64,000 nucleotides of DNA from the NCBI GenBank assembly GCA_016748015.1, contig JAAOMT010000742.1, positions 103,543 through 167,542 on the forward strand, read 5' to 3'. This DNA comes from Geosiphon pyriformis uo1 (lineage: Eukaryota > Fungi > Glomeromycota). This document shows, one piece after another, positions 22,656 through 48,947 of this stretch; the first letter of the stretch is position 1; each line of letters opens with the position of its first letter. The notes beneath the pieces were generated by a model. It had not been told where the DNA came from, made no database searches, and was given only the letters and a program-made list of their open reading frames with translations. A program made the position numbers and the translations under genes.

Positions 22656-24106
22656 ATGACTTTTTTTTATTCATCTTCCACACAACTTGGCTTTGGATAT
22701 TTTTCATTGTTGCTCACATTGACGACCGGTTTTATAACATTATGTTTGCTTTATATTTTACAACCTCCTATGAGACAAATTATTTATTCAACAAGAAATG
22801 AATATAATCAGAAAGAAAATTCTCCAAATGTGGAATTAACAGATAATAATTTTGAGACTAATTTATCTCCTATCGAAAAAGGCGCAAGAAATTTACCGAA
22901 ATTTAAAATAGACTACCTTGGATCGGAAGAAAATTTTAAAAGAGCTGTCAAGCTTATACCACCCCATTCATTCCTAAATCCTAGTAAAACGCTTGGTCAT
23001 ATTGAAAACATGGGTCCACAGCACTTTTTCGGTGACTCAAATGAAGATGAATTTTACCAAGAAAAGGTAGAGGATGAGCAGGTTTTACAATTTCTAGCTG
23101 ATATGGCGTTCTATGCACAGGAAGCGTATTGTCTTAATGATCGAGTTGGAAAGATTGGAAATAATGTTTATGGTGAGAATTGAGGACTATCCTATACCAC
23201 CATAATTGGTGCCCATAGCCTAATTTCAAAAATAATATAGGCTACGCAGTTGAAAATAAAAGAACAACAAATATTCGAGAAATCGTGTTTTATTTTCGTG
23301 GAGTAAAAATTAATACAGAGCGACAATGGCGATTAAGGCCTTATGCCCAAGTTGAATACGAACCACCGGAATCTCGCGAATGGTTGATTGAGACAGAAAT
23401 TTACAGAAACTTTAAAAGTGCCGAGAATAATATATTAAAAACTCTGAAATCTTTCGCAAACGAAACCTATTATTATCAGTATCGTGTTCGATTCACTGGA
23501 CATGGCTTTGGTGGTGGTAAGAGAATTGAAACATTTTAAAGAGAAATCTTTGAATTCATTGCAGAATCTGCAGATTACTTAAAAATTTTTGACAAAGTAT
23601 ACGCTGTTCTGGCTGGGCTTACCTGGAAAAGAAGGGACCCAAAATCTATCGTTCAAATAATCACATTCGGGCAGCCACGTTTTAGTACGCAATTTTTGAG
23701 CGAATATATAAATCAAGTTCTCTCAAGATTTCTGATTTATCGCATCACAAATTTTGATGATTTTGTGCCACAGTACCCTCCTCTCATGTATTGGAGCTAC
23801 GTTCACATCGGAACCGAATTTTGGATATCTAATCAATTGGGGTGTGATTGTTTTTTCCCCGAGACAAATGATCCCATTCCAAATGTTTATATGTGCTATG
23901 GGAAAGGAATTATTGGTGGTATGTTACGGGAAAATCCTGTAAGTAGAGACCAGGATTTCTTTTTGTGATCTTAAAAAAACTGAAAGAGTTAACCAATTTC
24001 CTATATCTCCTAGAATTGCAATAACCAAAACTTTGAGTCTAGAAGTGAAACTGCTCATAATGGTCCTTATTTTGGATATCTCATGGGAGAATGTCCCAAA
24101 ATATGA
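22656..24106 (+). CDS. Class-3 lipase-like protein L1, nucleophile Ser>Gly (TGHGFGG); N-terminal hydrophobic anchor
   Basis: Exons 22656-23172, 23241-23516, 23598-23938, 24014-24106, all GT-AG and stop-free. Motifs AYC, YFRG, GHGFGG, TFGQPR, RITNFDDFVP, EFWI..GCDC, AHNGPYFG. Confidence 0.88.
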
Positions 24107-25677
24107 CAGCTCAGTTTAAATGCTCTCTAAATAAATCTTGCCATAGCTTCTCTATATTTAAAATTAGTTTTAAAAACATATTATCTTATTATTGAAGTAG
24201 TTTAATATAGTATTTGGTTATGTTGAAAAAAATTATTTTTAGACCTATTAAGATTGAGAATTTTTTTGCAAATATGTTTATATTTTAAAATTAATTTCAA
24301 AAATAGTAATGAAATTTTCAAAATCCCCTAAATTATTAGAAATAATAAATTTTTACTTGCTTTTTTAGATTTCCAGGAGAAAAGATTATCTAAAGGAGAT
24401 TGATTTCCTCTTCGAATTTCCAAAGAGATGGCAGCTGACACAATTAAAGTTACTATTTTATCACAAAAATATATTACATGATTCTAAGTTTCCTATGATC
24501 ATATAATATTGTGTGGAAAAATCTTCTTTCTAAAGCATTCAATGAAAATTTCCTAGACATGATTCTAAAAAACACTCTTGGCAATATAAGTGCTTACTCT
24601 TTTCCTTCCGCTAATTAATTATTCAACCCCTTAAACAAATAATCTCGAATCTAATGAAAAATTTCATTTCGAATTTCCAAGGATCGACATAGTGGTCTCG
24701 CTCCTTGTCAATAAAGACGGAATGTTTGAGGGCATGCTTCTCAAATTTCCAGAGTTAAACCCGAAATCACCTCAAAATGGGAGACATTAAATGTACGAAA
24801 AATGGGAGCGAGTTTTTACTTACCAATAGCGTTATCTTTACAAATCAAAAGTTTTACGAATAAAATTAAGGATTTTAAAAGCCCTTTCCCAAAAAAATAT
24901 TTTGTGTAATTTTGTGAGCATCAATTTCGACTATTACCCCTTTTTTAAGAACCAGTTTTTATGAAAAAATATTTTTCGCAGCTTAGACCATGAAGAATAT
25001 TTGATATAATGATATTTAGATATCCGAATTTGTTTTGTCAGGTGGAAAATCTAAAAAATTTCTGCCATATAACTTTTTTTTTATTTAGACAAATGACTAA
25101 ACGTGTTGGAGAACATCAAGATTTCCCGAGAAACTTGAAATTCCATATAAACATGGTACCAAAGGAGTGAGTAACCTTCTAACAAATTTGCTTTCCTTAA
25201 CTAGTCTGCTATAGGATATTTCGGTCGTCTTTTTTGAGGGATTATCCCTATTCGTTTTTTTCATGACACAATTAACTAAACGCTTTGTTGATTTAAATTA
25301 TGAAATGAAAAATTTGCCGTGGAAATACTCTGCCAATCTGTTTTGATGTATTATTCCAAAACATGGAGTAATTTCTGACCAAATATTTAAATCATAAATG
25401 GGAAAACAAATGAAGAACACAATATAAAACCAGGGTATCCGCGATTTGGCATCATCATCATCGCTGATGCAGAGTTGTAAGAACAAACATCACTATTTCA
25501 CCTTCCTTAAATCTACCGATTCCTTTTGCCAAGCGAAATATCAGTTTTCAACTTTTTCAAGTTTACAATCTTCACTGGCGCTATAAATTTCAAAGAATCG
25601 ACCCATAAAATATGGCTATTTTGGGGCAGCTGTTACTCCTAAACCGAACAATTAAATTCATAATAAACAAAACAATT

Positions 25678-26875
25678 ATGGTTCTTTTCGCCTTTTTGAT
25701 TTGTTCTATTGCTTCGGCACGAATAGAGCCACGTTTTGGAGAGTTAACACATATATCAGACTTGTCAATTGTTAACTCTCCTGAACTATTGGCTAAAATT
25801 GAGAAATTTGCATATTATTCTAAAATCGCTTATTATGACGCAGAAACAATATATAATTGGAACTGTGGAGAACCATGTGAAAAATATAAAGGAACTGTGG
25901 TTGAGTTCGTTGCGATTACTGATCATGAGAATCAAGGTATATTTTTCGATTGGTACCCAAAAAATTTGAAGACAAATTGAACTTGAAGTTTTTTGTTTAT
26001 CTTTGTACACAGCATTTGTGGCCGTAGAACATTCAAGAAAACTTATAATTGTTTCATTTCGTGGCACAAGACTTGAGTATTTGAAGAATGATATTACTGA
26101 TATGCTAGTAATGCCTGTACCATACTCCCTGTATAATGGAGCTAAAGTTCACCGAGGCTTCTATGCTGCTTTTAAATTGACCTTTACTAAAATATTACCA
26201 CATGTGAGAAGACTTTTAACAGATTACCAATCATATAATGTAGCATTAACCGGCCACAGTCTTGGTGGTGGTAAGAGATTTTATTAATAATAGATTAATT
26301 TGTTGTTAAATTTAACTATAAGAAATTTAAATAACTTTTAAAAATTTCCAGCATTTGCGACTTTAACAGCTCTGGAGCTGAAACAAAAACTTTTTTCTAA
26401 ATTTCCATCATTAAAATCCGAAGTCATTACCTTTGGCCAGCCAAGATTAGGAAACGATAAATTTGCTTCATATGCCGAAAAAGAAATAACGCTCTATCGT
26501 GTGATTTTTTCAAATGATCTAATTCCACATATTCCCTTTCAGTGGATGGGATATCAACAGATTGGGGGAGAAATATGGGTTAAAGACTTGGACATTCCAA
26601 CAAAAGGAGGTACCGTGAGATGTGAGGCTCGTGAAGATCCGGTGAGAAATTTTAATTGAATTCAAGATTTCATTTTTATTTAGTCTTGATTTTCTTATTT
26701 AAATTCTTTTTTCTTTTCATAGAATTGTTCAAATTCAATTCCCTTTCACGAACTGCGCTTAAAACCACATTTTGGTCCTTATTTTGGTGTAGATCTTTAT
26801 GTACCTCCACCATGTAATTGCATGCCAAACAACTTGGCAGCTATATTTTCCCAAGGAAATGGATATGCAATTTAA
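25678..26875 (+). CDS. Secreted class-3 triacylglycerol lipase L2 with intact catalytic triad (alternative ATG at 25612)
   Basis: Exons 25678-25936, 26013-26270, 26352-26641, 26723-26875. Signal peptide MVLFAFLICSIASA; WNCGEPC, SFRGT, KVHRGFY, TGHSLGG, TFGQPRLGN, NDLIPHIP, PHFGPYFG (Rhizomucor/Rhizopus lipase type). Confidence 0.93.
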
Positions 26876-28244
26876 ATTCATCACAGTCAATTATTTTGCG
26901 TCTATTTCTTTTTATCGTCATTCTTTAACGATTAATATTCTAAATGAAAGGGGTTTCCTGTAATGAGAAGAATAGATTTTTTAAAAAAGTATTCACTTGT
27001 CTTAGATTAATTTTTTTTAGATATGAGATCCAGTATGAGAACAGCTTAAGCTGAAAAAGTTTGTAGAATTCTATGGATCCTAAATAGTTTTTTATAAAAT
27101 TAATTTCTGGCTACATTTATTATGTTTCTAATAAGCAGAATATAAAAAATTTTAATATGATGAAAATATAGCTTTGAAAGAAACTCTTTATGTATTTAAT
27201 AAAAAGAGTCATCGGTCAGGTCAGTGATCAAGGTTAGGTTAAAGACTCTATTTTTATAATAACTTAATATACGCTAAATATAGAAATAAAGAATTGATTA
27301 TGATTTATTCAATTCAACTCATTTTATCGATTGCACAAGAAACTTTTAAAGTTAAAAGTCAAGCCTTAAGCGCAGTAATATTTGAAGATTTTCTCTCAAG
27401 CACAAATTACTTTCTCGCAAAAACTCGTGGCGAAAATCACATAGAAAGTTAATTGAACCTAATCATAAACCTGATATTAAAAAATTTTCTTCAGTACCCA
27501 AAAGACATTACTGCTTAAAATATGAATCTGATGAAAAAGAGCGTTTTGTTGGTACTCATAGGCATTAAGATGAACTAGAGAAAATAGAAAAAGTGCTACA
27601 AAGGTTCTTTAAAAAAATTGACATTTGCAAGTAAAGATGGTCAATGATTGGATCAAATTTAAAGTTTTATCCCCATACAACGGTACCCCCAGAATCAACT
27701 ATGCTCCCGGCTGTCCCCCCTTTCATGTGTACGCCATTATTTCGGACGTTATTTTGCTAACCGCGTATGGGAACTGTATCTATCAAAATATTTAAATGAT
27801 CCGATAGATCACTAGTTTGACCAGGATTGCGAATGTTCAGCTGCATATCAAAAATTCCAAGAGTGGAAAAATCAAGAGAATTTGTGAAGAAATGATTGGA
27901 GCTGAAATTTTCTCACTTTTCAAAGAGTGGAATCTTCTTAAGCCATTAGATTTTCGGTTTTTTTTGGTTGTGATCCGATATTTATTTTTCTCAAACACTG
28001 AACGATATTTCAAATATTTCTGATGATATGAATTATTTGTTCTGCCGGCTTTCAGGAAAAAGGAAGATTTATCTTTTTAATTATAACCGATTTGAAGTAG
28101 ATGACATTTTCAAAATACAATAACAATTCCAATCGTCTGGAACGAGATGCATCGACAAATTTTGGAGTAACAAACATGTAATTAGAGATACATCAGAACA
28201 AAAGAAAAATTTTTTAATCGTCAAATTAAAACTTTTTCGCTTTC

Positions 28245-29848
28245 ATGTATTTCCTTCGCTCAGATCGGTTTCCTTATCAGATTTCAAGTGTTCACGTAAA
28301 GGAAATTTCATCCAAAAAGAAAAAGTTTAATAAACTCATTTTTAATATCACTACACAAAATTTTCACAGATTTTACTTTTGCGCGTTTTTTTTGCTCTTG
28401 TTCATTCTAGCCTTTTTCAAGCATATTTCTACGTCTAAAACATTATTGCCAGTATCGTTACTTGTGCCTATTTTACGCAACAGCTCGACCCTTAAAAAAA
28501 ATTTATATTCAGATTTAATTGAAAATTCAAAGATCTTTAATTTAACAATTCAAGATGACTACAATTCTATTTATTTCGTTCCATTTTCAAGTGCAACTTC
28601 TTTAAAGAATTTATTCATAGAAATGGAGAAGGTAAAGCAGAAGTTCACAGTAAAAAATAAAACAGGTTTACTTTTTGTTCGTAATTCAAATATAGCTGTA
28701 GATGGGATGGAACCTCTTAGTAAAAGATTGATCGGACCTAATTATAGAGAAGGACTTTTACTAGAATTTTCCAGATTCGCGCGATATGCTCAAGAAGCTT
28801 ATTGTCTTGATGATATCTTTGGTTTACTTGAATTTGGAGTTTACGGTTAGGATAAAATTTTATATTTTTTTTATCTTTTAAATGTGTCTTTTTTTTTTTT
28901 TTTTTTTTTAAATGATGAATAAAAATATTATTTTTATTGCAGCTGATACTGTCATAAGCGAGGCAAGCCGAGAAATTATAATTTTTTTTAAAGGTTTTAT
29001 GATGACTGGTTCAGATTGGTGGGAAAAAATTGGATCGGGTGTGAGATACCCTTTTGTAGTAGATACATGGGTTGATGAAATATATTATACCCGTTTTGCT
29101 CGTGCTTGGAAACCATTGGTAAATAAAATTAAGGGATTGAAGCTCAGCAAAAGCCTTTCTGAATATCGTCTCGTTACAACTGGTCATGGCGAGGGTGGTG
29201 GTATGAACATTTTCTCGTTGTTCCATCCATACATCCATCCGAGATTGCTTCAAATAATGAAAGCTTTAAGCATTAACTTCCATTTAGTCTATGCCATATT
29301 AGCAGCATTACAATTAAAGAAAATGTTTCAACTCAATGGAATAACCGTTTACACATTTGGAGCGCCACGAATGGGAGATAAGAATTTCGCTCATCATGTA
29401 AATAAGGAACTCGTCGTTTTTCGAATAACAAATAGCGATGACTTTATAACTCAGAGGCCATTTAAGAATCCAAATGGCTTGGGATATTGGCATCATGAAA
29501 CGGAATATTGGATTTCTGAGGAAACTCATTGTGGATGCCTTAACCCTTTTGTTCCTATCACGCCATTCAATACCAAAGTTTATGAATGCAGAGAAGTGAT
29601 GAATTGGTTTACAGGACAATTTGAGGAACCTTATGTAAAGATTTTATCGATGATGATATTCTATCTGGGAATATTTTTTTTAATAATATTTTAACTCTTA
29701 ATTTAATTTTTAGGAGTGCAATGAAATTGCACAATCAGAGATAGCGCTACTAGGATTTTCTTCACATTATGGTCCTTATTTTGGGATCATAATGGGTGTT
29801 TGTCCTCAAGACAATCCTTTTGAACTTAATGAAATGATAGATGATTAA
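28245..29848 (+). CDS. Class-3 lipase-like protein L3, Ser>Gly (TGHGEGG); signal anchor
   Basis: Exons 28245-28845, 28943-29200, 29288-29634, 29714-29848. Motifs AYC, TFGAPRMG, NSDDFI, HHETEYWI..CGC, SHYGPYFG. Confidence 0.88.
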
Positions 29849-30898
29849 AAAAATTGTATTCTCTTTGCAGAGTTTTTGATAGATTAAATGATTAAATTTT
29901 CGCGTTAGTATTTGTTTCTATTTTTATGAAAATCATTTATCAAGTAGTGAAATTTTTTAAATCATTTCATTTTTATGTTTAGCTAAAGAAGATTTTTTTT
30001 TTTTGCCTGAAAAATTTCCTTAATCAGTTTGGAAAGGTAAAAAAAAATAATCTGACAGGATAAAGCATTTGATAATTTTGACAACTTTTTTTTGTGAAAT
30101 TAATTTTCACCTTTCGAAAAAGATTAGTGACATTCATATTGAAAAGAGTTTTTTTTTTTTTTTTAGTAAAACTTTATTTAAATTTTAAAAATTTTACAGA
30201 GAGGTTTTAAACAACTTTTTTTTTTAGGTATTTTGAAATTCATTTTTTACAATTTAGATATTTTTTTTGAGAATCCCTGAAAAAGTCGCGGGAATTATTT
30301 TTTAAATCAGTCAAATGACAATTACCTTTTACAACAATTTCGATGATTAATTGTTTTTTTTTTAAAAAAAAATCTGCTTATAAATCATGATTAATATTTT
30401 ATTTAGCCAGCACGTTCATATCCACGAGGAAAGGTCGATAAGATAAAGTTTTATAACTAAAAATGTCAAGATCAATTAACTGAATTAACCGATTTGAAAT
30501 GAACTCTCAAAAGGTATTATTTAAAAATTTATACATATATGCTAAATTTTAGGTCTAATCGTTTTTTTAAACGTTTCAAACCAATTTCTATCTCTGAAAA
30601 AGGGATTTTTTACGAAATGACCTAGATCAAAAATGCTACTAAAGAGAAAATACAACCTCACAACATCAAATATTTTTTCAGACAAAATCTTTTGAATTTA
30701 ATTTTTTCTCAAGATTACAAAAATCACTTTAGATTCAACCAATATGATGATTTCATAAAATGGTATGAATATTCTTTTAAAATTTATTTACAAATATATG
30801 CTAAAAATTCCAAAAAAAACTTTCTTAGTCATGTTACAATAATATATACACCGTTACAACTTGTTAATAAATACATGTAGGTGGGGGGTTTTTTTTTT

Positions 30899-32137
30899 TT
30901 AGGACTGATATAGGATTGATTCGGGGGATTCAAATTTACCACGTTCAATCTTCCCAGAATCACCATGAGTCGAGAAACGATTTTCAGTCAATGTGTGAGA
31001 AGAAGGCCATGAAAGAACATCTTCAGGATTATTGTCATCGTCCTCTTCGTCTTTTTCAAGTTTAATACATGGAAATTTAAATATTCCAGATTGTAACATA
31101 ATATATATCGTATAAAGCATTGGAATACTATTTCAATTCAATGAAAAATCCAGATATGAATTAAGATATTATAACTTGTAACCTATAATCTATAAACAAT
31201 GAGCAATTGAATCGAACTTACATTATCGCACGCATGAACAATAGTACATTAGGTGCCAAGGAGAACCGTTCACGACCAGTTACCAAATCAAAAATTACCG
31301 GAATGCTGTTGGAAATTTGTACAAGACTGACACATAATGAGGTACCCGTTAACCATATTCCATACCTGAGAAAAGGATTAAAATTATATTCAATTTAATT
31401 TTGAAATAAAAATTAATTAAGCAAAAACAAAAACCTACCAATATCCTAATACGGTTCGCTCAATTTGGCGAAGCCATATACTAAAATGAGCATAAATTGA
31501 TGCGACTGAAATGAAAAAATTTCAAGATTTTATCAATTAAAAAGAACAAAGAATACCTAATATTTAATCTTATATAAAATCACTTACGTGAAAATATAAA
31601 TCCAACCAAAGCACATGATAATTTTGGAACTACTAACAATAGTTTGTTCAAATTCGAATTGTTAACAGTACATCCATACCATTCTATTTCAACCCCCCAC
31701 CGATGGGTTCCCCATCCAATACCCAAATGGACCATTGTTCCAACAAGTGCTATTGCCCATATAAAACAGGTAATCAAAGAAAACACTCGCTTCTCAAAGT
31801 TCTGATTTCGTGCTACTCCATACCATAAGTATACTGCTATGGCGGTAGTCGTAATTTGTGAAGGATAAAATATTAATCTTCCCAGATATGCTTGTATCAC
31901 ACAAAAAGTTTCAAGTTTTTGGAAGCTTGAATCATTATCATGGCTATATAAAAGAATCGCAGGAATAGCAAAGATCCTTTCTAGGAAGGCAGAAATGAAA
32001 TATTGAAATAATGTCCATTTAGCAAGAAATGGCTTTGTTCTTCTTTTTAAAAGGAGTAAACTCGAAAATATGACCAAACCCAAGCTCAAGAATTCTACAA
32101 GTACGTAAGCAATAGACAATAAAGACAAACTTTGCAT
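30899..32137 (-). CDS. 7-transmembrane GPCR-like protein (cAMP-receptor-like / Git3-like class), 4 exons
   Basis: Seven hydrophobic segments after splicing; FCVIQAYL at the start of TM3; WYGC in ECL2 (disulfide partner); acidic/Ser-rich tail. GT-AG introns at ~31507-31588, 31366-31438 and 31128-31221. Confidence 0.75.
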
Positions 32138-32223
32138 AATTCTACCAAAAAAACCACCGTATGAAAAAAAAGTAATTTTTTTCAAAAAATTTTGTTTTTA
32201 TCACAGAATGAGAAAAGAAACAA

Positions 32224-32265
<42 letters not shown>

Positions 32266-32266
32266 C
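32224..32266. repeat. (CAA)n microsatellite upstream of the 7TM gene
   Basis: Near-perfect ACA/CAA run. Confidence 0.85.
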
Positions 32267-33583
32267 GATAAGACCAATAACAAATAAACTAATTTTACGA
32301 GTAGGTCAAAAGGATTTCAAGAGGAATACAAATTTTTTCTCGGGGTGGGAAAAAGTTTGTTCGCTACGCTAAAAAGTCATGAAATGCAAATGTTTTTCGA
32401 ATCGTCCTATGCTCAAACCACGACGGAAATTCTCAAGCTCATTTAATAAAGCGGCAAAGATCTGTAGCCGTAGTAGTCGTGGTGGCAAAAAAAAAATTTC
32501 GTCGAAAAATTTTTTATTGGAAGAGCGGTTGGTAACGGTGGAGCCCCAACTAATTGCTAACCTTTTGCCTCAGGAAAATATTAAAACGCCCTTTCAATTA
32601 AATATCATCATAGTTCGTATTCAGTGAATATCGATCAAACTAATTTTAGTTAACTCCCGTCATACATATTTTATTTGTACACTTAAAATGTTTTGATCAT
32701 TAACTAGATTGTGGATAATTATCAAACATGTTAGGACATTTTGAAAAATGATCGTGCTCGTTGAAACAAATCCTTTTTATTGGCATTTATTATTGAATTT
32801 TCTTTTCGGAGAATTTTAGCTCTTTGCCGAATTCTATTGTTGTAAAACTCTCTTTTAGAATATTCGTATTGGTCAAAATAGCAGTATGTGAATTATCTGC
32901 TTCAATAAGTGTTCAAGAAATTTCCATCTTCTATGAACAAACAAGGACAGACAATACCAAAATAGAAACCAAATAATTCTGCAGTGTAACTAATTTTTGC
33001 TTCACAAGTGAATTTCTTAAATAGTGATTGAAACCAAACAAAAATTTTCCGGAAGCAGTGACTTCTTACACCTCCTCAATTTTGGAAAAAAGTTATTTTG
33101 CCACTCTCTTAATCATAACTTATTTAAAAATCACGGATCTTTTAAGCTTAAAAAGGAGAGGATCAAAATCTTTGGGATGAAACTTATTAAAAATTTCTGG
33201 AAACTTTGAAAGTTGTAAAGACACGCTTCTTAATATATATATATATAGTAAATAAATAGAATCCACCAGTTAATTGTTGACCTTATAGATATTTGATTTC
33301 CTTTTGAATACCATTTATTAAACGTTTTATAAATCTTTATATCAAATGAGATTGTTCGGCCAAGAAAATTCATTCTGTTTGAAAGTTTTTTTGTGTACCA
33401 AATCCCCTATTTGCTTGAGCTTTTTTCTAACAATCTAGATAATCAGATCGGGTGTTTGGTAACAAATAAAATTATATTTCGATTTTAGGCAGTACATATT
33501 CGGGATGAAATTTTACCCGTTCCATCATCATAGAATAAAATTCCAAAGAGGCTTTTGCCCAATAATTTGAAAACTTTTATCAA

Positions 33584-33645
33584 GCAAACAAACAGACAAA
33601 CAAATAGACAAACAAACAGACAAATAAATAAATAAACAAACAAAC
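33584..33645. repeat. Degenerate (AAAC/AAAT/AGAC)n tetranucleotide repeat
   Basis: caaacaaacagacaaacaaatagacaaacaaacagacaaataaataaataaacaaacaaac. Confidence 0.8.
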
Positions 33646-36333: not shown

Positions 36334-37884
36334 ATGGTTGTATTTGATATTCTGGGAAAAAAAATGTTGTTATTAAACAATTATGAATCAGAAAAGCTCT
36401 TGGTAATTTTAATTCTTAGAGTAATTCTATTGCATTTGTTCATCCCTCTAAGAAATTATGCCCTCGAGCAAATTCCATCAAAGGAAAGAGTGGGTCCAGA
36501 AATTTTTAGTTTCTTTAATAAAACACAATTTTTTCAAATTAGCTCCAATGAGCAAGCACCGAAAACCTATTTGAAACCAAATTTGAATAAAAAAACAATG
36601 TCAAAAAGAAACAATCTATGGCATATATCAATAAATTCTTGGCCAACGACTGAAAAAAAACTCGAGAAAAAATTGGTTCAAGATCCAATTCTACTCAACC
36701 AATTTGCGAAATATGCTGTTTACGCTAATCATGCTTATTGTAATACTAGCGGCAATGCCGAAAATTTTAAGGGAACCTATGGTAATTTTTGTCCATTTTT
36801 CAGAAAAATCACTTTCATTACTCCTCCCTAATTTGAAATTAATCTAATACAATTTGACAGGAAATGCTCAATTAATTGAAAATGAAGTAATAGTTTATTT
36901 ACGAGGTTAGATGACATGTTAAAAACAACTAATTCATTTAGTTTTTTAATCCTTGAAATTGGTAAAAGATAAAAACTAAACAGAAATATTTTTTGGAACT
37001 TTAAAATGAAATTTAGGCGATGAATACTTGTTTACTCTTATGAAAGAACAGAGATTTTCTACCATTCACTACCCGGAAAAGGTGAAAGGATCAATGGTTA
37101 TTGAGTCATTCTATAATTCTTTCAGAAAAGTGAGAGGACAAGTTTTCGCTCTTATTTCAGTGCTTTTAAAGAATAGTAAATGTAATAACCTTCGAGTTGT
37201 GGGGCATGGTCTAGGGGGTGGTAAGTTGGTCCAAATTACTCTCATTGAACTTTACCTTTTCCATTCTCATAAAGTTATATCTTTGGGATAGTCGTAATTT
37301 TTTCTTTGCCATTTCTTCTAGCATATGCTATATTTGTGGCATTAGAACAACGAAAGCTCTACCCAAAACTTGATATCAAAATTTATTCTTATGGCCAACC
37401 GCGTGTTGGAAATGATCAATTTGTCTTTCACGTGAACAGACTCTTTCCCATACAAATTTTTCGCATTACCCTTTTTTACGATTGGATATCACAAATTCCA
37501 AGACGAATATTAGAAACAAAGTTTGCTCATTACGGAACAGAATATTTTATCTGGTACAATCTTAAATGCGAATGTGTAGACCCTTACAAAAATGTTGACC
37601 CAACCGTGTTTGAGTGTAATTATGGGATGGCAAAACACTTGGACTACAATGAATCAAAATACCGAGAGCCGAGAGTAAATAAGAAATTTCCATTTTATTG
37701 CTTTTATTTTTGAATTGATGAGTTAATTGCGAATTTAAATTCTGAATAGGATTGTAATGCTCTTTATGCAACCTGGATTAGAGGAAATGGTATATCTTCA
37801 CATTGGGGACCATTCTTTAAACAATTCATGGGTGACTGTCCTGAACGGAGAAATCCTCCGATATTTAAAATAGAATCGCAATGA
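36334..37884 (+). CDS. Class-3 lipase-like protein L4, Ser>Gly (VGHGLGG); start ATG at 36334 or 36364
   Basis: Exon 1 ends at 36781; then 36861-36905, 37017-37220, 37322-37674, 37750-37884. Motifs HAYC, YLRG, SYGQPRVGN, YDWISQIP, EYFI..CEC, SHWGPFF. Confidence 0.86.
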
Positions 37885-38465
37885 TTTTTTAATTGTACAT
37901 TTCAGTAATCTCCAGAATGTTTTCGAAATTTTTTTTTCATTTTATTTAGTGAAAAGTTAACTTAAAAGTTTTATCCCTCATCACTGAACATCACAGAAAC
38001 TTAAAAATTATAAGGATTCAGTTTCTTGTGAACCCTAAATTTCATCCAGGTACTCGAAACAGTAAAGTTTAATTTATGTTCTTTGATTTTCACAGGTGGC
38101 AGTTATTCCTTTAACTATCGATCCTAATTCTCAAAAATTGATAGTATATCTATAATGTTTTGTTAGGATCATTGCTGAAAACAAACAAGATAGGTCAAAC
38201 CTACTTACCAGGATTAGATTCATAACCTTCCTATATATGTAATTTAACGAAATTCACATTTTCATAATTTCCAAAAGTTTGGGGCCGAAACTAAATAAGA
38301 TTTTCAATTTTACATGTATTAATTTTAAAAAGCATCGATACCGAACATCTGTTAAAATATTTAATTAGGGAATAAATTATACAGGTTATAAAATCTCACA
38401 AACAATGATTTAAAAATTATGTCAATTAAATTGATTTTTCAAGGTTATCAGAACTCGTTAAAAAA

Positions 38466-39858
38466 ATGCCATCTTTTTCTTTTAAATACACTTCTTTCTT
38501 TGTATCCATCATTATTCTGATCATGATAATTATCATTTCTATTATCTCAATGACAACTCTTAAACCACGAAAATATAAAATGGAGAGTTCAAAGTTGTAT
38601 AGTAAAATTTTGTCGAAAATAAAAGAAAAAAAAGTTGTTAAAAATGAAACCAATTATCAATTGGAGGTTCGTAATTTAGGAGGATTTGGAAAAGGTGGTA
38701 AAAATTCACCAAAAAAAATCTTGGTTGAAGATGTAAAAGAATTGAAATTTTTAAAACGAATGGCTCATTTGGCCAATATTCCTTATTGCTTTGACACAAA
38801 TGAAATTGGGAATGGAAGTGCAGGCTTAATTGGTATGGAATTGAAATTTAAACATTATCTTGGAAAATGGGTCATTTTATCATTAAAATCAAATATATTT
38901 AATAATATTCTAGCTGATGTTGTCAAAGATCATGAGACTCAAAATTTTATTATCTTTTTACGAGGTTTGTCTTCAATAGAAAAAGCAAAAAAAAACTTTT
39001 CTATTATAATTGAAATTAAATGTCTCACTTCATTATATTATTATGAATAGGCCCGGAATACTCAAAAGAGGAATGGGACACAAGAAGATATAAAATGTAT
39101 TCACTTGATGAAAGAGCTAAAATTGAGGGTGGATGGGTACCTATCACAGAAAGTGTTATGAATCGATTGTACAATAAGATTATCACCATGAAAGAACCAA
39201 ATCAAAAAAGTCTAAATTTGGTTTTTATTGGACATGGTGTTGGTGGAGGTATGTTTTATCCAAATAGATAAAAGGATCAAAAATCGTTGAATACTTAAAA
39301 ATTTCATTCTTTGATTTCAAGTTTATGCCGTACAAATGGCCATGCTTTTCTTATCGAAAATAATTGGCCATGAAAATTTACAATTCAGGGAACTTGAAAT
39401 CCAGTTAATCGTGGTTACTTTTGGCCAGCCACGCTTTGCAAATATCGCCTATACAAAATTTATAAACATAGTTCCAAAATTGAAAATATATCGTGTGACG
39501 CATGCCAATGATCATGTTCCTCACAAACCAAAGGTATCCACTTCTGGTGAGAAATACATACATCATGAAACAGAATATTGGATATTGGATAAAAATTGTG
39601 ATTGCATAGATAATGGTTCAGAATTTGAGTTGTATAAATGTCCTGGTTATAAAAAAAATAACCCGGAAAAATTTGGTGAGAATCTGGTGAGTAGCAAAGT
39701 TTGAAGTTTGGATCATATCTCTGGAAAAACATTTTTTGATTCTTTTTTCTCTGCATTAGGGATGTAATTTGTCAACAAATGGATTGGGAGTAGATGCTCA
39801 TTATGGCCCATATTTTGGAACAATATTCGGGAAATGTGAAAGCTTTTACACCGATTAA
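38466..39858 (+). CDS. Class-3 lipase-like protein L5, Ser>Gly (IGHGVGG); type II signal anchor
   Basis: Exons 38466-38832, 38914-38964, 39051-39248, 39322-39686, 39760-39858. Motifs PYC, FLRG, TFGQPR, NDHVP, HHETEYWI..CDC, AHYGPYFG. Confidence 0.88.
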
Positions 39859-40193
39859 AAATTAAATCTTATTTCTCTTTATAGATTTTAGCCTTGTTTA
39901 TTTGCCAAGAATATATATTTTAAAGTTTTTTATTCCCTTCAAACTATTTAAAGATTGGTCTTTGATTTGTCTTGCGTACAAGAAATTATCTATTTTCAAA
40001 TTATTAAGAGAAAAATTGACCGTCTGACATTTTCCCTTGCTTTTGATTTGAAAAATTATCCCAAACTTCACCCATTACAGCAATGAAGATTGCCAAGGAA
40101 AATATTAATGACATTTAAAATTTCTGCAATGTCTTTACTAAACAAAACATTGATCAGTGAAAATTTTGATATTCAACAAAATTAGGTGTCACA

Positions 40194-41680
40194 CTATATG
40201 TCATCAAAATCGTCCTCAAGTGAAGGTGGGCACATTCCCATATTTTGACCAAAATATGGGCCTGAGTGTGATAAATCGATAGAAAAATTGGTAATTTGTG
40301 CTCCAGCATTACAATGCTAATGAAAAAAGATCTGTGAAGTTTATTTAGTAAAATTAAAACAGAGTATAAAAAATAAGTCTTACGGGATTTTCATGGATAT
40401 AGCCATCCACGAGAGGACCAATGCATTCATATACCACAAACATTTGACTCGTGTCAACGCATTCACAATTGTCACTGTATGTTATCCAATATTCTCGGTC
40501 AAAATGCCAATGGCCTTCCAAGTTTTTTCTTTCTGGCAATTGTGGAACCCGGTCATGGGAATGTGTAATACGGTAAATTTTATTGGGAAAAAGAGTCATG
40601 ACAAAGTGTGTAAAAAACAGATTTCCCATGCGTAATTGTCCGAAGGTATAAATTTCAATATCAAGGTAATATTCGGTCATCTTTAGCTCCAAAGCTGTAA
40701 AAACGGCATGTACTATAAAATCTCGAGAAAACATCAGAATTTGATCCATTTTATGAAAAAACAAATGATAGCTAAACATTTTGTACATACCCCCTCCTAC
40801 GCCAAATCCTGCTAAACGGACATGAAATTGAGGCCTCAATAATGAAGAAATCATTTCCATCAAAGTCTTCTTAGCCCTTAAAAAATCTTGATAGAGCTCT
40901 GCGACTACTTGGGCTTGAGGTATATTTGAGTAAGGCCGCCACATATTAAAATTTACTAGCTCTTCCTCATCATAATTGTAATCATATCCTCTCAAATATA
41001 TAATTAATTCTCTGTTTCCCGAGATCTCTGCCCGAGCTAATAATTGAGACAGATAAGAGCTTTGCTTAATTAAATAAAAAAGACGGTTATAACTTTATGT
41101 TGTTTTTACCGTATATTCCTGGTCCAACCATGCCACCTTTGTTTTTTATACAATAGGCCTTATTAGCATAGTAAGCATATTTCCGAAATTTTTGCAACCG
41201 CTTTTGAGGGTCATCTAGTGTTATTTTTCTCTTAAAATGACTTTCTGGATTGGTGGCCAAAATTGGGAATTTCAAATTTCTTTTTGACTTTTTGCGATGA
41301 AATTTCAAGTCTAAACTAGCATTAAAGGTTTGGAAATTTCTAGATAAAGAAGAGAATTCGAATTAAATTTACAAAGCATGTTTGAGGCAATTAAGATGGG
41401 ATTAAAGTATAGAAATGGCGCACATTTTATCTGCTAATTTGGATCTGAATATATCAAAGTGAGAAACCCATTCTATTTTCCTACGAGCTAAAATAGAATG
41501 ATATGTTTTATTTTGATAAGAAATTTCTTGTTGGATTAACTGGCTATTTTCGAAATTCATTGTCGTCTTTGTAGGCCTAAAACGAGAATTTACACCATGA
41601 AAAGCAGTAAAGCTAGAAATAATAAGTAAAATGAGAAAAATAAAATTCATTTGATTATTGAATTCCTCAGTCGTATTCAT
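40194..41680 (-). CDS. Class-3 lipase-like protein L6, His>Phe and Ser>Gly (AGFGVGG); signal peptide
   Basis: Motifs KAYC..GPGIYG, YLRG, GFGVGG, TFGQLRMGN, HDRVP, EYWI..CEC, SHSGPYFG; stop at 40194. The first intron boundaries (~41310-41485) are uncertain. Confidence 0.82.
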
Positions 41681-42209
41681 TTCTGAGTATTTCAGCTATA
41701 CCCTTGATTTTATAAACATCATGTCAAAAATCAAAAAATCTATTATTATCTGTCAATCTATTGATGCTTATTAAGCCACTAAAAATTTGAATGATTCGGT
41801 GAAAATTTCGAGATTTTGTTTTCAAATATTTGCAGTTTCCAAAAACATGGTTCTAAAGACTGTGTTTTTAAATCACTCTTTCCAAAATATTTTGCTCCAG
41901 GAAAAATTACTAATGAAATTCGTTTTTCCTAATCGGAATCGGAATGTTCTTTGCTGACTAAAAAAGATACATGTATTTTTAAATACCAGACAATTGATAG
42001 TGAGATTCTGGGCTTCAGACATAAACTTAATTGTCCGATAGAAATAATTAAGGCTCCGGAAGCTATCTAAAAAAAAACTAATTTTAAAGTATAATTACAA
42101 TTTCAGACTATTTAAATGAAGCTTATTGACTTTAGTTTTTAAGATTTATAATATCTTAAAGTCACAAGAGTAAAGAAAATATATATCCGACGAAAATAAT
42201 AAATCAATT

Positions 42210-43660
42210 TTACCATGGAGGCCCTTCAGGTGGGCATTCCATCATCATTCCTAAATAAGGGCCATTATGCGCGGCATAATTTTCAGTTTTATATTGGTTA
42301 TTGCACTCCTTTAAAGAAACCGCGAATAAAGATTTTTGATTAAATGGTGCTGTAAAATGCTTATAATGTAAAATAGTCTTTTTAAAAAGTTTACCAAACT
42401 CTCTCCGATAAATTTTTCCGGGCCTAATAGTGGTCCGTTACAAAGAAATAAATTTCCAGTGGCACACAAACAATCATCTAGCTCTATCCAAATTTCATTA
42501 ATCGTGTGAGCATAAAATCTTTGGAAAACATTAGGCGGCAACCTTGGAACATAATCATCCATGTTAGTGACCCGAAAAATTCTAAGAGTGGTATTGGAAA
42601 AAGAATTCACATAATTTGCAAACTGAAGATTGCCAATATGAGGTTGTCCTAAAGTAATAATGCTTAATTTTTGTCCAAATTTCCGTGATATTAAATCCAG
42701 CAATCCAAGTAAAGCATACACTAAAATATTTATATTAGAAATACTTAATATTAAATAAGGAACTTTTATGGATGACTTACTTTTAAAAAAAAATTATTTA
42801 AGCTCACCCCCACCCGAGCCATGTCCAACTCCCGTGATATGTGTTATAACTTTCTTTTCAAGAGCCTTATCAATGCACTTTTGGAAATTAACCTGAATAT
42901 TTTGGAAACGTCTATTGAACTCAATGTCGATTTTGGCACCATCGACCTTAGGATAGGGGACCAGCGCTTTCTGCTTGGCTTCCCAAAATCTCTGATCTCC
43001 TATTGGCTCACCTCTTACAGCAATAATACCTTGGCTTCCTTGCGTAAAAAATTCTGCTAAAGGAAAGCAAAATTGATGTTAGCCCATTAAAAAATTGAAA
43101 AGCTATACCTTTCAATTTCAATAATCCAAAATACCATAAATTCCTGGCCCAATAGCTGTTTCCTCATCGAAACAATAAGAAAGCATGGCAAATCGTATAT
43201 AATATTTTAGAGGATCGGATTGACGTATGAGAGTTTTTCTCCCTTGGGAAGTTCTTTTTGAAAAAAATTTCCTTTTGGTGTCAAAATTCGTATTGAGACT
43301 AGATAAATTAACAGGTAGTGAGATATTTGGTTTTGGAAAAAAAATTATCTGGCTTTTAAAATTTGGGATTGGTAAATATAGTTTTTATTGTATAACAGCA
43401 TTTTTTAGTTGCTTCACAGCGATTGTCGAATTAGTTATATGATCAGTGAAAATTGAAAGGGCATTAGAATGTTGGTTTTTTATTATTTCAACTTCTTTAG
43501 GAATGTATTGGAGCCTCCAGGGCTTTTTCAACAAGATGTAATTTAGTCCCAAAAGAAAAGCGATAAGAAAAACTGAACTTTTTAATTGGTTCTTGATATT
43601 AAATTGAGTATGTCCTTGAAACTGGGTTTTCCGAACCTCTTTTATTGGAAATATTCATTT
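42210..43660 (-). CDS. Class-3 lipase-like protein L7, Ser>Gly (VGHGSGG); 5' end uncertain, possibly pseudogenising
   Basis: Motifs SYC..GPGIYG, VRG, GHGSGG, TLGQPHIGN, DDYVPRLP, EIWI..CLC, AHNGPYLG; stop at 42210. There is an in-frame TAA at 43385-43387 in the pro-region and no clear in-frame ATG. Confidence 0.72.
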
Positions 43661-44390
43661 CTAAATGGCTATTAGTCTCATTGTCACCCGTAGAAACTCT
43701 CTTATTTTTTAAAATTCAAATTTAAATCAAATAGTTCAGTTCCTTTATCTAGCCTGTTTATTAATTTAGTTTGCAAAATACCCTTTATATCTTTATGTAG
43801 CAATCAAAAGAAAATTTTTAACAAGTAATGTATTTCAAAAATTTTTACTAATATTGAACTATGAATCATCTATTTCATTAGATTTGCAGAATTATTAGAG
43901 TGAAATATCATTGTAAAAATTTTTAAGAAAATTTCAACTATTTGCTTTTATTTATAAATAATGCTATTCTTACAATATAGGTTTTTCCAAATCAAGCTTG
44001 TTTCCTAAATATTATTTTTGTTTAATAGCAGTGTCTAAGATGTATGATAAGACCAATAAATTTTCACAATGCATCACTGTATTTATGTTTTCTCAAGTCT
44101 TTTGTAAAAATGAAATTCAAAGCTTTGATCTAATACCTTTAAGAATTTAATTTAATTACGCCGGATGTTATTCAAAATCTAAACGGCTTTCATGATGAAT
44201 AAATTATGTAACTATAAATGAGGAAACAATAATAGGGAATGGGTACTGCGTAATGATCGACAGTTTTTTCTTCACTAGTAATTTTCCTATCGAACGACCT
44301 CAACAATGAAAAAGAATCTAATCCATCAAAATAAACTCGCCTGGAGTTTTTAAAGATAATTCTTGAAGTATTAATTTATTAATTTTCTAA

Positions 44391-46787
44391 TCAATTTCGA
44401 GGAAAGACGAGAATATTGTAACATTTGGTCCTCCAGGATGGTGTGATAAATTCGATGATTTCGAGATTTTGATCAGGAATACTCTGTAGTTTATAGCGAT
44501 GCAAGATTGTTGCTAGGAAAAGACGAATTTCTTGAAGAGCAAGGCTAAAAAATATTTTTACTATAATCAACTTTGCTTCAATGAGTCATAAATTTTGCAT
44601 TAAAGGAAATAAAAATAGTTATTACCTGTTGTCAATGGAACTGATGGTCCCTTTAAAAATGAAAAAATTAATGGTGACCGCACAAAAATGTAACGCATTT
44701 TAATTATACTTTAAGATTAATTTAATTTGATACCTACCAGCTCCACATGGATAAAAGGCATCTCGAGGAACAGGATTTGTTGGATTCATCCATCGCTCAG
44801 GTACAAATTCTTCAGCATCCTGGCCCCAATATTGGGTGGAACGATGAATACTGTGAACTTGGGCCACCACTTCCATCTGTTTGGCCAATATAAAATTAAA
44901 ACTATCTTTAATTAAAAAAAAAAAATAAGAATTTGAAACCAATTACCCCTTTTGGTATGAGATGTCCACCCAGAACAATATCATCTTTTGCTTTTGTCTT
45001 GAAAACTTCAGCTAAAGAGTAAATAATAAATTTTCTTAACTTTACTATTTTTTACTTATTTAGAATATCACAATATATTTTTTACTTAGGGGGGAAGGCC
45101 ATAGCCTCATTGATTCTTTAATAACCGCATTCAAATATCGTAAATTTTTAAGATTATCATGTCTTGGCAATTCATCGTTATAGGCGGAAGACAAAGAAGT
45201 ATCGATTTCGAGATAAAGTTTTCTCAATTTTTTGGGATGTTGAACGAGTAAAATTAAGGTCATCAAAACGTTGAAAGCAATCAAGTCACTTTCTGAAATC
45301 CTAAGAATGAATTCATAAGGATGAGAAAAACGTATAGCATAATGGTTTTAGAGAAAATATTTTTAACTTACAAAAATTCCATCAATTGTTCTTTAATCTT
45401 ATCATCCGTTAGGCCATGTTTAACTTGGCTGGATACGTCAAGTAACATTTGTAGAAGGTCATTTTTTGGAGCAGAAATGCTTTGTCGACGGTTTTTTATC
45501 AAGCGAAAAAAGAACTTTGAAATAAAAAATTAGTTTTTAATTAATAAACAAGTATTATTAATAATATTTATCAATGCGTATAAGTAAAATATTTCAAGTA
45601 CGTTGCTAAAATATGGGTCCTCATTCCAGACCAACTTTAAGAATGGAAATTGAGAAATCTTTTGAAAATTCAAGATTAGTTAAATCACGTTAGGATAATG
45701 AAGCTAAAAAGTATTTTAATGAAATGATACTCACAAAGAATTTTCTTTTCAAAGCCTCTCTTACTTTCTTGAAGAATGGATGTGCTTCTATTTGAATCAA
45801 ATCAAAACTGATACTAAAAGCAGCTTCACCAACTATCTCCTAAATTGCAAAAAAAAAATATGTTTAATGTATCAAATATCCCGTTTTCAAATTAAGCTTA
45901 ATATTTTTATTCTTAAATAATATTACCAATGTGCATCTTTGAATAAGGTCAGAAAAGTTTATAATCAAACCCTTTTTTAAGTCCCCGCCCTTTAATTCTT
46001 GGTCAATTTTTTGAATAATTTGACCCATAGACTTTTGCATCAATGGTTCAAGACTTGATAAATTTTTGATTAAAGGGGTGTATAAAAGAAAATATCTCTA
46101 AAAAGGATGGAATAAAAAATTAGTAGCACATAAGGATATCCATCAAACACGTACTTTTAAGAAGATTACATTTATTGTGAAAATCTATTCAGAAGATATA
46201 ATAAAAAACGTTATATATTAAAATAATATTTTTAAAATATCAAAATTTATTCGTTATTAACCTGTTTAATGGCATCTCGATCGGCTATCATGACCTTTTG
46301 AAAACCTAGATACGAAAGAAGCATAGACTGAAAATCACATTTATAAACGCCTTATAATTAAAAATTTTATTTGAAATGTATTAACTTACTTGTTCGCACT
46401 ATAGATCCATATTTCGGAAATAAATTGAACTGCCAATAGCTCCAGCTATTTTGACAAAGGCAAAACTATTGAGTTAATGTACAAGGATTTTTCAATCTGT
46501 TAATAGTTCGATACCAACCTTATTCCTCGAACTGCAATGTATAACATGTATAATCCATGGAAACTAAACAAACTAGGCCCAGGTATTTTGCGTTTATCAC
46601 CAATACGTAGTTTCTGTTTTTCAAAAAGAGGTGTAAACATAATGTGACGCGCCAACATAATCCCAATATTGGATGAAATTCATTTTACATTGTAAATTAG
46701 ACTTGAAAAAATAAAGGCAGCAAAACCAGTCAAAAATTTGAACACTATCTCTCTGCCAATAGGTAGGAACTCTATAAATGTCTCCAT
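44391..46787 (-). CDS. Cytochrome P450-fold protein lacking the heme-thiolate cysteine (14 exons, open frame)
   Basis: N-terminal anchor, IPGP, KYGSIVR, LEPLM, EIVGEAAF, DLLQMLL, YLNAVIKESMRL (ExxR), LGGHLIPKG, FVPERW. The heme motif splices as PCGAGTISSIDNSLALQEIR via micro-exon 44626-44650. The I-helix reads FLISESDLIA. Confidence 0.85.
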
Positions 46788-47707
46788 AGTTAACGAATTT
46801 TGATAGATACCATCGCGTCGCTCAGCTTAAAGTTTTATAATTGATGAGGGATGTTTAGTATGATCTGCAACCTATAGTTTTAGATTTGATTGCCTGTTTT
46901 TAGATCTGCCAGAAATAAAGTTCATAATAAATAAGTGTATAATAAAAAATCCTCATGGATATCAAAACGATAGCCTTTCAATTCGTTCTGTATATTTGAT
47001 GATGAAAAACTTGATAAATATAAAGGCTGATTTTCGTGAAACAGGCAGCTGAATTCCTAAAAACTGATTCTCATTATTACCACTATAATGAGTAATTTTG
47101 TACATGTGTGTTGACACATTTGATGAGGATAATTGAAACAGTAAAAATTCAAGATTTCCCATTTATATCTGGTATCAGACAAATATTTTAAACTTGTTGA
47201 AAAAAAAGTTACAAGAAATAGTAATTCTGAAAAGAGATCATTCCCGAAGATTTGGCAATATTCTGCCTAGGAATAGTTCTAAATTTGCAGCTTATTCAGA
47301 AAAGACAATCGTTGAAAAGTTTCGACGAGAGCTTTTTAAATTGGTAGCCCATCGAAAACCAATTTATTTTCAACTCATTTTGATGTTTACAATTTAAATA
47401 AACTAGTTAAGAAATATCTTTTTGCAATAATAAAGAAAAATTAATTAATTAATTAATTTAAAAAGATATTTTTATAATTTTTATTTTAATATTTCGTCAA
47501 CTTATTTAGATTGAAATAGTTTGCTGAAATTTTAAAGATTTGATAAAGTTCATCAAAAATAAAAGTAATCTCATAAAATTTATTTTTAAAATTCAAACAT
47601 GAAAATTTCAAAGTTCTATTCAATAAGTTTGAATAGAGTAGAATGCGAAAAGAGAATATAACTAATAAAACACAAGAAAAAATAGTTTACAAAAGAAACT
47701 GACAGAT

Positions 47708-48947
47708 TTAGAGAACTGGAAATGTTGTGCCAAAATATGGGCCAAAGTGAGCTGTAGTGCTTGATCCATCTGTTGACAAGCTACATTCCTTTGGAAATGA
47801 AACAAACCCATTCATAAGTAAAAGATAATAAATTTTGGATAAATTAAAAGTTGAGAACGTACCGGATTTTCACCATATCGAAGCGAAGCTTTAATATTAT
47901 ATCCAGGGCATTTATAGATTTTTGGCTCACCATTAATTTCTGCACAATCACAATCATCTGATATCCAATACTCTAATTCATGATGCATATATTCAGGTTC
48001 AATTGGATGTATCTTTGGTTGATGAGGAAAATGGTCATTTTTGTTGGTTACACGATATAATGTGAGCAGGCTATTAACATATTTGGCAAAGTATGCGTTT
48101 CCAATTCTCGGTTCCCCAAAAGTTACCACAATCCATTCTATACTTATATTAGGATCACCGCGAAAAACTTCCGAGAAAGTTTCTTTCAACTGGACAGCAG
48201 CAAGCAAAGCGTAAACTTTTTAAGATAAAAAATTTAGGTTTGATATGACAAACTTTTATATATAACCAAAAAATACCAATAATTATACCTCCTCCAAGTC
48301 CATGTCCGGTAAAATAAATCTTGAGTCCAACAAATGCATTTGTATTTTTAAGGAAATCAATTATAAATCTTTGAGCCTTTAACGCAATGTCAACGGAATT
48401 TCGCAGCCATTCACCGTCAACTAAGGCCTTCCCAATTTTCTTGTATTTTTGTAAAGAAGGTATTCTTGAAGCCCATTCTTGTGGTCCCATCCTTTTTCTA
48501 CTTCCCACAAAAATTATGAATTCTTTATATAGAGCAAGTTCTTCAAAGTCAGCTATTAAAGAAAAATTTTAAAAATCAGTCTTCCTTGACTATCTTACTA
48601 AGTATTTGATTGCTTCTGTTTATCAACTCACCTACTACATCGGGCACTTCTAAACCCAGCCGATTTCCTCTGGGAGAAAGATATGGTTTCTCAGCGAATT
48701 TGGCCATTCGAGCCAAGAGACTTAAAGTCGCTGGATTTGTGATAATTGATTTTGGTTGAGAGTTTTTAGGTTTTTTACCAAACCCTTCCGCAACTATTTC
48801 TACTGATTTCAATATCTTTGGGAAAAGGGAATAAGGTCTTTTTAAATCTGTAAAGCCAACAATTTCCCCTTTCAAAATTGGAGTTTCTCCATGAGCTATT
48901 CGAAAAAAAACACTCAAAGAGAGAAATAAGAGAATCAAGTTCATCAT
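47708..48947 (-). CDS. Class-3 lipase-like protein L8, Ser>Gly (TGHGLGG); signal peptide
   Basis: MMNLILLFLSLSVFFRIAHG; 4 exons; motifs GHGLGG, TFGEPRIGN, NDHFP, HHELEYWI..CDC, AHFGPYFG; stop at 47708. Confidence 0.88.

Follow-up and report, generated by a model that had tools for sequence, protein, structure and literature searches.

Analysis of a 64,000-nt stretch of the Geosiphon pyriformis uo1 genome (Glomeromycotina; GenBank assembly GCA_016748015.1, contig JAAOMT010000742.1, positions 103,543 to 167,542, forward strand) showed an array of eight paralogous class-3 lipase genes, designated as L1 to L8. Seven of them carry Gly in place of the catalytic Ser of the GxSxG nucleophile elbow. 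The whole stretch is referred to as the window, and positions are counted from its first nucleotide. The eight genes belong to a genome-wide family of about 400 genes, of which about three quarters are of the Gly type. The family probably consists of selectively kept, non-hydrolytic, fast-diversifying proteins of lipase fold that would be secreted or anchored. A preliminary description, made from the window sequence, had presented the genes as a local array around an active lipase; the array was instead a slice of the large family, and L2, the gene with the Ser elbow, represents a canonical sister lineage.

A degenerate search for G-H-x-x-G-G gave 7 sites in the window against a chance expectation of 0.04. 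Six of these were GHGxGG (23498, 29182, 37202, and 39230 on the + strand; 42810 and 48291 on the - strand), and the sole GHSLGG was located at 26252 (+) in L2. The search for G-F-G-x-G-G added an eighth elbow, GFGVGG, at 40793 (-) in L6; a GFGKGG match at 38682 was discarded, being part of the N-terminal region of L5 and not a nucleophile elbow. Codon reading agreed with the preliminary description: Ser is encoded by AGT in L2, and Gly by GGC in L1, L3, L6, and L7, by GGT in L4 and L5, and by GGA in L8.

The catalytic residues were tabulated for 191 lipase domains from 164 database proteins and the L2 and L7 models. The nucleophile column contained G in 149 domains, S in 17, R in 6, A in 5, D in 4, N in 3, and F in 2. 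Gly was not strictly fixed: Ala, Arg, Asp, Asn, and Phe also occur at the site, as does Ser, which is encoded by two classes of codon, and the Ser copies were polyphyletic. The oxyanion-hole position, the residue after 'RG' that corresponds to Ser83 of Thermomyces lipase, was Thr in L2 (SFRGT) and Ser in the Coemansia domains. In the seven Gly genes of the window it was V, F, D, P, Y, E, and R; Ser or Thr occupied it in only 11 of the about 149 Gly domains, and was absent from it in every Ser domain nested within the family. Since the nucleophile Ser and the oxyanion Ser/Thr are both replaced, two independent parts of the catalytic machinery have been lost, with Asp and His retained. The Gly copies would accordingly lack the serine mechanism and be unable to form an acyl-enzyme intermediate.

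The remainder of the domain was well preserved. The triad Asp and His were present in all eight window genes, and the near-invariant columns of the family were GxxxGG, FGxPRxG, R.T..D, E.W, six Cys, and H.GPYF. The genes were intact in this respect, as the preliminary description had stated. A rival explanation is that the Gly copies are still enzymes in which a His-Asp dyad activates water or a substrate hydroxyl in the cavity left by the Ser-to-Gly change; candidate reactions are activated-ester hydrolysis, acyl transfer, and lyase- or dioxygenase-like chemistry as in other alpha/beta-fold enzymes. In favor of this explanation, Asp was kept in 186 of the 191 domains, and His in 142 of the 167 that have a residue in its column, at a mean column identity of only 19–23%, and the GxxxGG elbow and the fold were retained. 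Against it, more than 90% of Gly copies have lost the oxyanion Ser/Thr, about 15% of copies have Asn or another residue in place of His, and a nucleophile site that tolerates Ala, Arg, Asp, Asn, and Phe is a poor fit to a precise catalytic cavity. Altered chemistry was considered quite unlikely.

The fold was examined with an AlphaFold2 model of L8, built with a 60-sequence family alignment. The model had a predicted local distance difference test score (pLDDT) of 85.5 and a predicted template modeling score (pTM) of 0.80. Its top Foldseek matches in the PDB were 6qpp, 6a0w, 1tgl, 1tib, and 1uwc (E 1e-16 to 1e-12), and the best structural matches were the Rhizomucor miehei lipase-propeptide complex, Rhizopus and Thermomyces lipases, and Aspergillus feruloyl esterase A. 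The PDB sequence search was concordant, and aligned GHGEGG of L3 onto GHSLGG of Thermomyces lipase. Judged from the sequences and this model, the seven Gly genes bear the mark of alpha/beta-hydrolase pseudoenzymes, an essential catalytic residue being missing while the fold would be retained.

Comparison with these fungal enzymes showed that the family shares with them the PF01764 domain (TM-score of the L8 model normalized to the target, 0.65–0.77), the triad Asp (..ND.VP..), the His (H..YFG), an export-type N-terminus, a lid-region Trp in the family consensus, and an N-terminal AYC and C-terminal Cys that match the disulfide of Cys22-Cys268 type. It differs from them in having Gly for the GxSxG Ser (seven of eight window genes and about 78% of the family), in lacking the oxyanion Ser/Thr after 'RG', in its CxC...C...C cysteine pattern and ENxxCN motif, and in numbering hundreds of copies instead of a handful. 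The plant proteins EDS1, PAD4, and SAG101 also have a PF01764-type lipase fold without lipase activity, and SAG101 is without a catalytic triad; their structural ranks were 44–49, far below the fungal lipases. These plant proteins are intracellular and carry an EP domain, pair as heterodimers to bind signals derived from nucleotides, and have few members in each genome, whereas the Geosiphon proteins have export or anchor segments, number hundreds, and end about 15 residues past the His motif. The C-terminal EP domain that marks EDS1, PAD4, and SAG101 was absent, as the proteins stop 10–20 residues past that motif. Extracellular alpha/beta-hydrolase folds with a replaced nucleophile Ser have also been reused for binding in the neuroligins, in which Gly takes its place, in other non-catalytic cholinesterase-like adhesion molecules, and in the lipase-derived yolk proteins of Drosophila. 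All of these differ from the Geosiphon family in belonging to other branches of the superfamily (type-B carboxylesterase and pancreatic-lipase type) and to animals, in forming small families, and in having known partners.

The gene plan was deduced from three-frame translations, deposited proteins, and homology. Exon 1 covers the hydrophobic N-terminus through the AYC helix, and exon 2 stops exactly after GxxxGG. Exon 3 contains FGxPRxGN, YR(V/I)T..D.VP, EYWI, and CxC, and the last exon begins with x-C-N/S and includes H.GPYFG. In all eight genes, GxxxGG is followed directly by a phase-1 intron, and the last intron lies immediately 5' of x-C-N/S, which bears out the shared intron positions of the preliminary description.

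On the + strand, L1 (GHGFGG; deposited protein P0046) spans 22656–24106, with Gly at 23504–23506, Asp at 23759–23761, and His at 24056–24058. L2 spans 25612–26875 (exons 25612–25936, 26013–26270, 26352–26641, and 26723–26872), with Ser at 26258–26260, Asp at 26516–26518, and His at 26768–26770. L3 (GHGEGG; P0001, G9A89_001431) spans 28245–29848, with Gly at 29188–29190, Asp at 29440–29442, and His at 29765–29767; its intron 3' of the elbow (29201–29287) is an 87-nt phase-1 intron with GT..AG ends. L4 (GHGLGG; P0038) spans 36334–37884, with Gly at 37208–37210, Asp at 37480–37482, and His at 37801–37803, and L5 (GHGVGG; P0079) spans 38466–39858, with Gly at 39236–39238, Asp at 39510–39512, and His at 39799–39801. 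On the - strand, L6 (GFGVGG; P0014) spans 40194–41680, with Gly at 40801–40803, Asp at 40552–40554, and His at 40266–40268. L7 (core GHGSGG) spans 42210–43384 (exons 43384–43135, 43056–42808, 42720–42395, and 42308–42213), with Gly at 42818–42820, Asp at 42554–42556, and His at 42267–42269. L8 (GHGLGG; P0106) spans 47708–48947, with Gly at 48299–48301, Asp at 48034–48036, and His at 47747–47749; a look-up of contigs encoding P0106 recorded none.

Exon open reading frames (ORFs) of L1–L4 and L6–L8 matched Pfam Lipase_3 (PF01764) with 24–57 bits at a gathering cut-off of 22; the short exon-2 ORF of L5 alone scored 16 bits, under the cut-off, and for L8 one exon-2 ORF had no PF01764 match and the exon-3 ORF scored 35 bits. 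In precomputed Pfam lists, family members carried PF01764 alone, except for two with an extra domain (PF00067 and PF24840).

Upstream ORFs of all eight genes contained an N-terminal hydrophobic segment, which fits secretion or anchoring, as had been described. The start of L8 was clearly signal-peptide-like. The segment of L7 lies within an ORF at 43600–43388, for which no in-frame start codon was found.

The extent of the family was determined in the genome assembly (128.3 Mb, 792 contigs, about 29–30% GC). PF01764 gave 783 first-look candidates, and stops were rare among the 150 matches listed, nearly all of which were stop-free. Codon-resolved counting of GH?xGG, with the reversed pattern as control, gave 329 sites with Gly (GHGxGG; control 30), 41 with Ser AGY (control 5), 22 with Ser TCN (control 6), 42 with Ala (control 4), 18 with Asp (control 8), 18 with Arg AGR (control 2), and 2 with Thr (control 7). 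The real sites were estimated at about 300 GHGxGG, about 50 GHSxGG, about 40 GHAxGG, and a few with Arg or Asp; GF and GY variants such as L6 are outside this count. The family spreads by both tandem and dispersed duplication.

With P0001 as the query, exhaustive HMMER searching gave 515 proteins at E <= 1e-3. Among 20 sampled matches, 19 were 'hypothetical protein' entries of Geosiphon and 1 was a Coemansia lipase with GHSLGG. The search with a 35-sequence profile gave 23 proteins, all from Geosiphon, and a word-gated search for relatives outside Geosiphon with the single L3 protein found only its own product. The Gly family appears to be specific to the Geosiphon lineage.

The main phylogenetic tree was constructed with IQ-TREE from 151 domains, with the nucleophile column removed, and was rooted on Coemansia. 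L2 was sister to the other 147 tips, and the family node was reconstructed as Gly by parsimony, in keeping with the proposed old age of the Gly state. The seven window genes of Gly type fell in different deep clades, and only L4 and L6 formed a pair. The window array is therefore old or assembled, and a recent local burst was ruled out.

Eleven nested Ser tips were scattered over the tree and required about 10 regains, or 38 losses if the regain of Ser is barred. Their scatter was like that of shuffled labels (11 changes, mean 11.65). Among loci added later, L011 (Ser TCA) was sister to four copies with Ala GCA, L015 (Ser TCA) and L018 (P0142, Ser TCT) were inside Gly clades, and L017 (Ser TCT) was adjacent to a Phe copy. 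A careful 56-tip tree with extra loci also placed TCN-Ser copies within Gly/Ala clades with high support, while the support of the family base was only 63/58 and the deep nodes were noisy for such diverged paralogues. A single retained clade of active Ser copies was rejected by the approximately unbiased (AU) test (log-likelihood difference 538.7, p-AU 3.9e-7), in which the Ser group was set by the trait but after the first tree had been seen. In another array, L011–L013 (G000:C640:190700-213900), an Ala-type GHAIGG (GCA) lies beside a Ser-type GHSIGG (TCA); the two elbows lie in a near-identical context, and one base distinguishes their nucleophile codons.

The AGY and TCN codons of Ser cannot be interconverted in one step without leaving Ser. 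Because of this, and because Thr was absent while Gly and Ala were abundant, the simplest codon path would be AGY (Ser) – GGN (Gly) – GCN (Ala) – TCN (Ser). Gly is the hub state, at a site that is not frozen.

Ser and Gly copies are interleaved in the arrays (L2 among L1–L8; the Ser copy C378:51147 among ten Gly copies) and have the fold and surface features in common. This arrangement would suit Gly copies that partner, regulate, or act as decoys for the Ser-bearing lipases of the family, through heteromers, competition at the interface, or an inhibitor sponge; many pseudoenzymes play such parts for active paralogues. However, about 300 Gly against about 50 Ser copies would be an extreme ratio for regulator-enzyme pairs, and the nested Ser copies are themselves without the oxyanion Ser/Thr; such a role was considered very unlikely.

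Selection was estimated from recent paralogues of two other arrays (C371 and C378), using the Nei-Gojobori method on exon blocks matched by hidden Markov models. The ratio of nonsynonymous to synonymous divergence (dN/dS) was 0.46–0.88 at dS 0.08–0.38, and dS was close to intron divergence. Pooled over four independent pairs, the proportion of nonsynonymous differences (pN) was 0.143 and that of synonymous differences (pS) 0.204 (p = 0.0007). By exon, over six independent pairs, dN/dS was 0.34 for exon 1 (N-terminal), 0.81 for exon 2 (lid to elbow), 0.50 for exon 3 (Asp), and 0.40 for exon 4 (His). The core exons appear to be under purifying selection, and the lid exon to evolve nearly freely. 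The selective maintenance claimed by the preliminary description was supported for the core exons, and overall constraint was weak.

In the youngest pair, the neighbouring Gly copies L006 and L007 (G000:C378), pN/pS reached 1.45 in the lid exon. The alignment of L006:2480-3010 with L007:2486-3016 was a mosaic: patches in exon 1 and the lid exon were 86–87% identical, while the remainder, introns and 3' half included, was about 99% identical. No gene-conversion donor for the divergent patches was found among five neighbouring copies.

These values also bear on a mostly neutral explanation, namely birth-and-death amplification by segmental duplication, in which most copies are functionless and have not yet decayed. 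The dN/dS range of the recent paralogues, the value for the lid exon, the freely varying nucleophile site, and the thin expression evidence would suit it, as would dense tandem arrays in a repeat-rich genome (64% repeat; PMC9453076). However, paralogues only 19–25% identical keep open exons, GT..AG introns in place, and invariant Gly, Asp, Cys, and His; the core exons have low dN/dS and pN is below pS; stops are few among the listed Pfam matches; and L3 is transcribed and spliced. Neutral amplification was considered unlikely as the main explanation.

Expression was examined with one public run (X1), compared over 23250–29249 (6000 letters), which gave two contigs. Contig 1 covered 180 nt of L2 exon 1 (25757–25936). 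Contig 2 was 237 nt long with a depth of 5.5; it matched 29082–29200 without differences and then resumed at 29288. The L3 mRNA, with the intron 29201–29287 removed, reads GHGEGG-V-YAILAALQLK, with the Gly codon GGC kept. A genomic retrocopy as the source of contig 2 was rejected, the junction being absent from the assembly even when 2 mismatches were allowed. Because the joined sequence is absent from the genome, contig 2 derives from spliced RNA, and L3 is transcribed and spliced. The preliminary description had raised splicing that restores a Ser at the elbow; for L3, restoration by splicing or editing was ruled out by GGC in the spliced contig.

Deposited G. pyriformis proteins matched six of the eight window genes (L1, L3, L4, L5, L6, and L8). 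The L3 ORF was 99% identical to a 349-aa 'hypothetical protein G9A89_001431 [Geosiphon pyriformis]'. Family members are deposited as 'hypothetical protein' and not as lipase. Lipase_3 domain counts would inflate the lipolytic capacity of the Geosiphon genome about eight-fold.

The models P0001 (L3) and P0014 (L6) retain the in-frame, stop-free intron after the elbow (87 nt, 29201–29287, and 78 nt, 40713–40790, respectively). Because the L3 intron is removed in RNA, these models hold a spurious insertion of 26–29 residues at the active-site helix. The P0038 (L4) model has an additional small exon near 36869–36904. The deposited L1, L3, L4, L5, and L6 proteins start at an internal Met, 3' of the hydrophobic N-terminal segment: upstream ATGs are located at 22656 (L1), 28245 (L3), 36334 (L4), 38466 (L5), and 41680 (L6), while the deposited starts are at 22770 for P0046 (L1), 28623 for P0001 (L3), and 36598 for P0038 (L4). 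In the window genes, the segments missing from deposited models are missing as a result of these downstream start calls.

Other deposited proteins of 550–1286 aa (P0103, P0002, P0018, and others) contain two or three lipase domains apiece; they are probably neighbouring array genes merged by the gene caller and not true multi-domain proteins. P0153, encoded elsewhere in the genome, fuses Lipase_3 and P450 domains and probably merges two adjacent genes.

A non-hydrolytic binding or recognition role at the surface or outside the cell was favored because the serine mechanism appears to be lost, the genes are intact over deep divergence, at least one is expressed, export or anchor segments are present together with conserved Cys of a kind typical of extracellular proteins, and the exon of the lid and groove evolves fastest. 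The family would descend from a secreted class-3 lipase of Rhizomucor/Thermomyces type, with L2 as the surviving canonical relative. At or near the family base, the nucleophile Ser would have changed to Gly and the oxyanion-hole Ser/Thr would have been lost. The lipase fold and the six conserved Cys would have been kept, along with the triad Asp and His and the N-terminal segment for export or anchoring. The nucleophile elbow of alpha/beta hydrolases is a strained backbone position; Gly is therefore probably preferred there, as it fits best once catalysis is not needed.

The proteins would be extracellular or surface-anchored, and the old substrate groove would bind lipids, fatty acids, or other hydrophobic ligands or surfaces without cleavage, with the Asp-His pair as a polar anchor for the ligand head group. 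The entry 1gt6, the complex of Ser146Ala Thermomyces lipase with oleate, was among the listed structural matches to the L8 model, and the fatty-acid carboxylate in that complex is reportedly near the His. The family may function in lipid binding, capture, or sensing. A family of about 400 fast-evolving copies is no less suited to recognition, or to an effector-like role, than to shuttling nutrients.

Several points weigh against a non-hydrolytic binding family. The loss of hydrolysis is argued from precedent in other serine hydrolases, which are essentially dead when the nucleophile Ser is mutated to Gly or Ala, and the near-invariant Asp and His exceed what a purely structural role would require and could indicate residual or different chemistry. 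The overall dN/dS of the recent paralogues indicates weak constraint only. Expression of Gly genes was seen for L3 alone, in one short contig of a run labelled 'RNA? (probably DNA)'. The N-terminal hydrophobic segment was found in only 28 of 163 deposited family proteins; as starts were called too far downstream in the window, the annotation probably understates how often family members are secreted or anchored. The about 400 fast-evolving copies also exceed the need of a nutrient-lipid shuttle.

A wider reading is that the family forms a hypervariable extracellular repertoire, for which the disarmed lipase would be the scaffold. In this repertoire the lid exon diversifies (0.81 pooled and 1.45 in the youngest pair) around a conserved Asp-His core. 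Single-base steps would move the nucleophile codon back and forth along AGY-GGN-GCN-TCN, and complete copies could be re-created repeatedly from the about 300 'off' copies. The repertoire would function in recognition or lipid capture at the Nostoc interface. This reading was regarded as speculative and unlikely.

The array is flanked by a 548-aa F-box ORF at 18790–20436 (-), a reverse-transcriptase fragment (RVT_1) at 4729–5334 (-), and Kelch-repeat exons at 49819–50793 (+). Cytochrome P450 exons (PF00067) lie between L7 and L8 at 44391–45284 (-). The gap between L3 and L4 contains a 201-aa ORF at 31580–32185 (-) with several hydrophobic stretches and no Pfam match. Upstream of the array, positions 14001–18000 form a very AT-rich stretch with a GC content of 15–18%, compared with about 30% elsewhere.

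The preliminary description had placed the genes in an arbuscular-mycorrhizal setting; the host is instead Geosiphon, whose partner is Nostoc, and not a plant-root mycorrhizal fungus. The nutritional dependencies of Geosiphon are those of arbuscular mycorrhizal fungi, and it is, to our knowledge, the only known glomeromycotan with intracellular cyanobacteria. A search of the genome for the 'meander' domain of fungal type-I fatty acid synthase, made without a positive control, gave no match, which is consistent with fatty-acid auxotrophy and no more.

The searchable literature, which did not include the published genome of Geosiphon (Malar et al. 2021, Curr Biol), gave no account of the family. 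Lipase-like and other alpha/beta-hydrolase proteins without catalytic activity are already known; a secreted, Rhizomucor-type glomeromycotan family of about 400 copies with Gly as hub is undescribed in the searchable texts. With the gene number of G. pyriformis calculated from its published gene density, the family would amount to roughly 1.5–2% of all genes. If the reading proposed here is true, the family would be among the largest known pseudoenzyme expansions and, as a repertoire for lipid binding or sensing or for recognition, would be a lineage-specific component of the Nostoc symbiosis.

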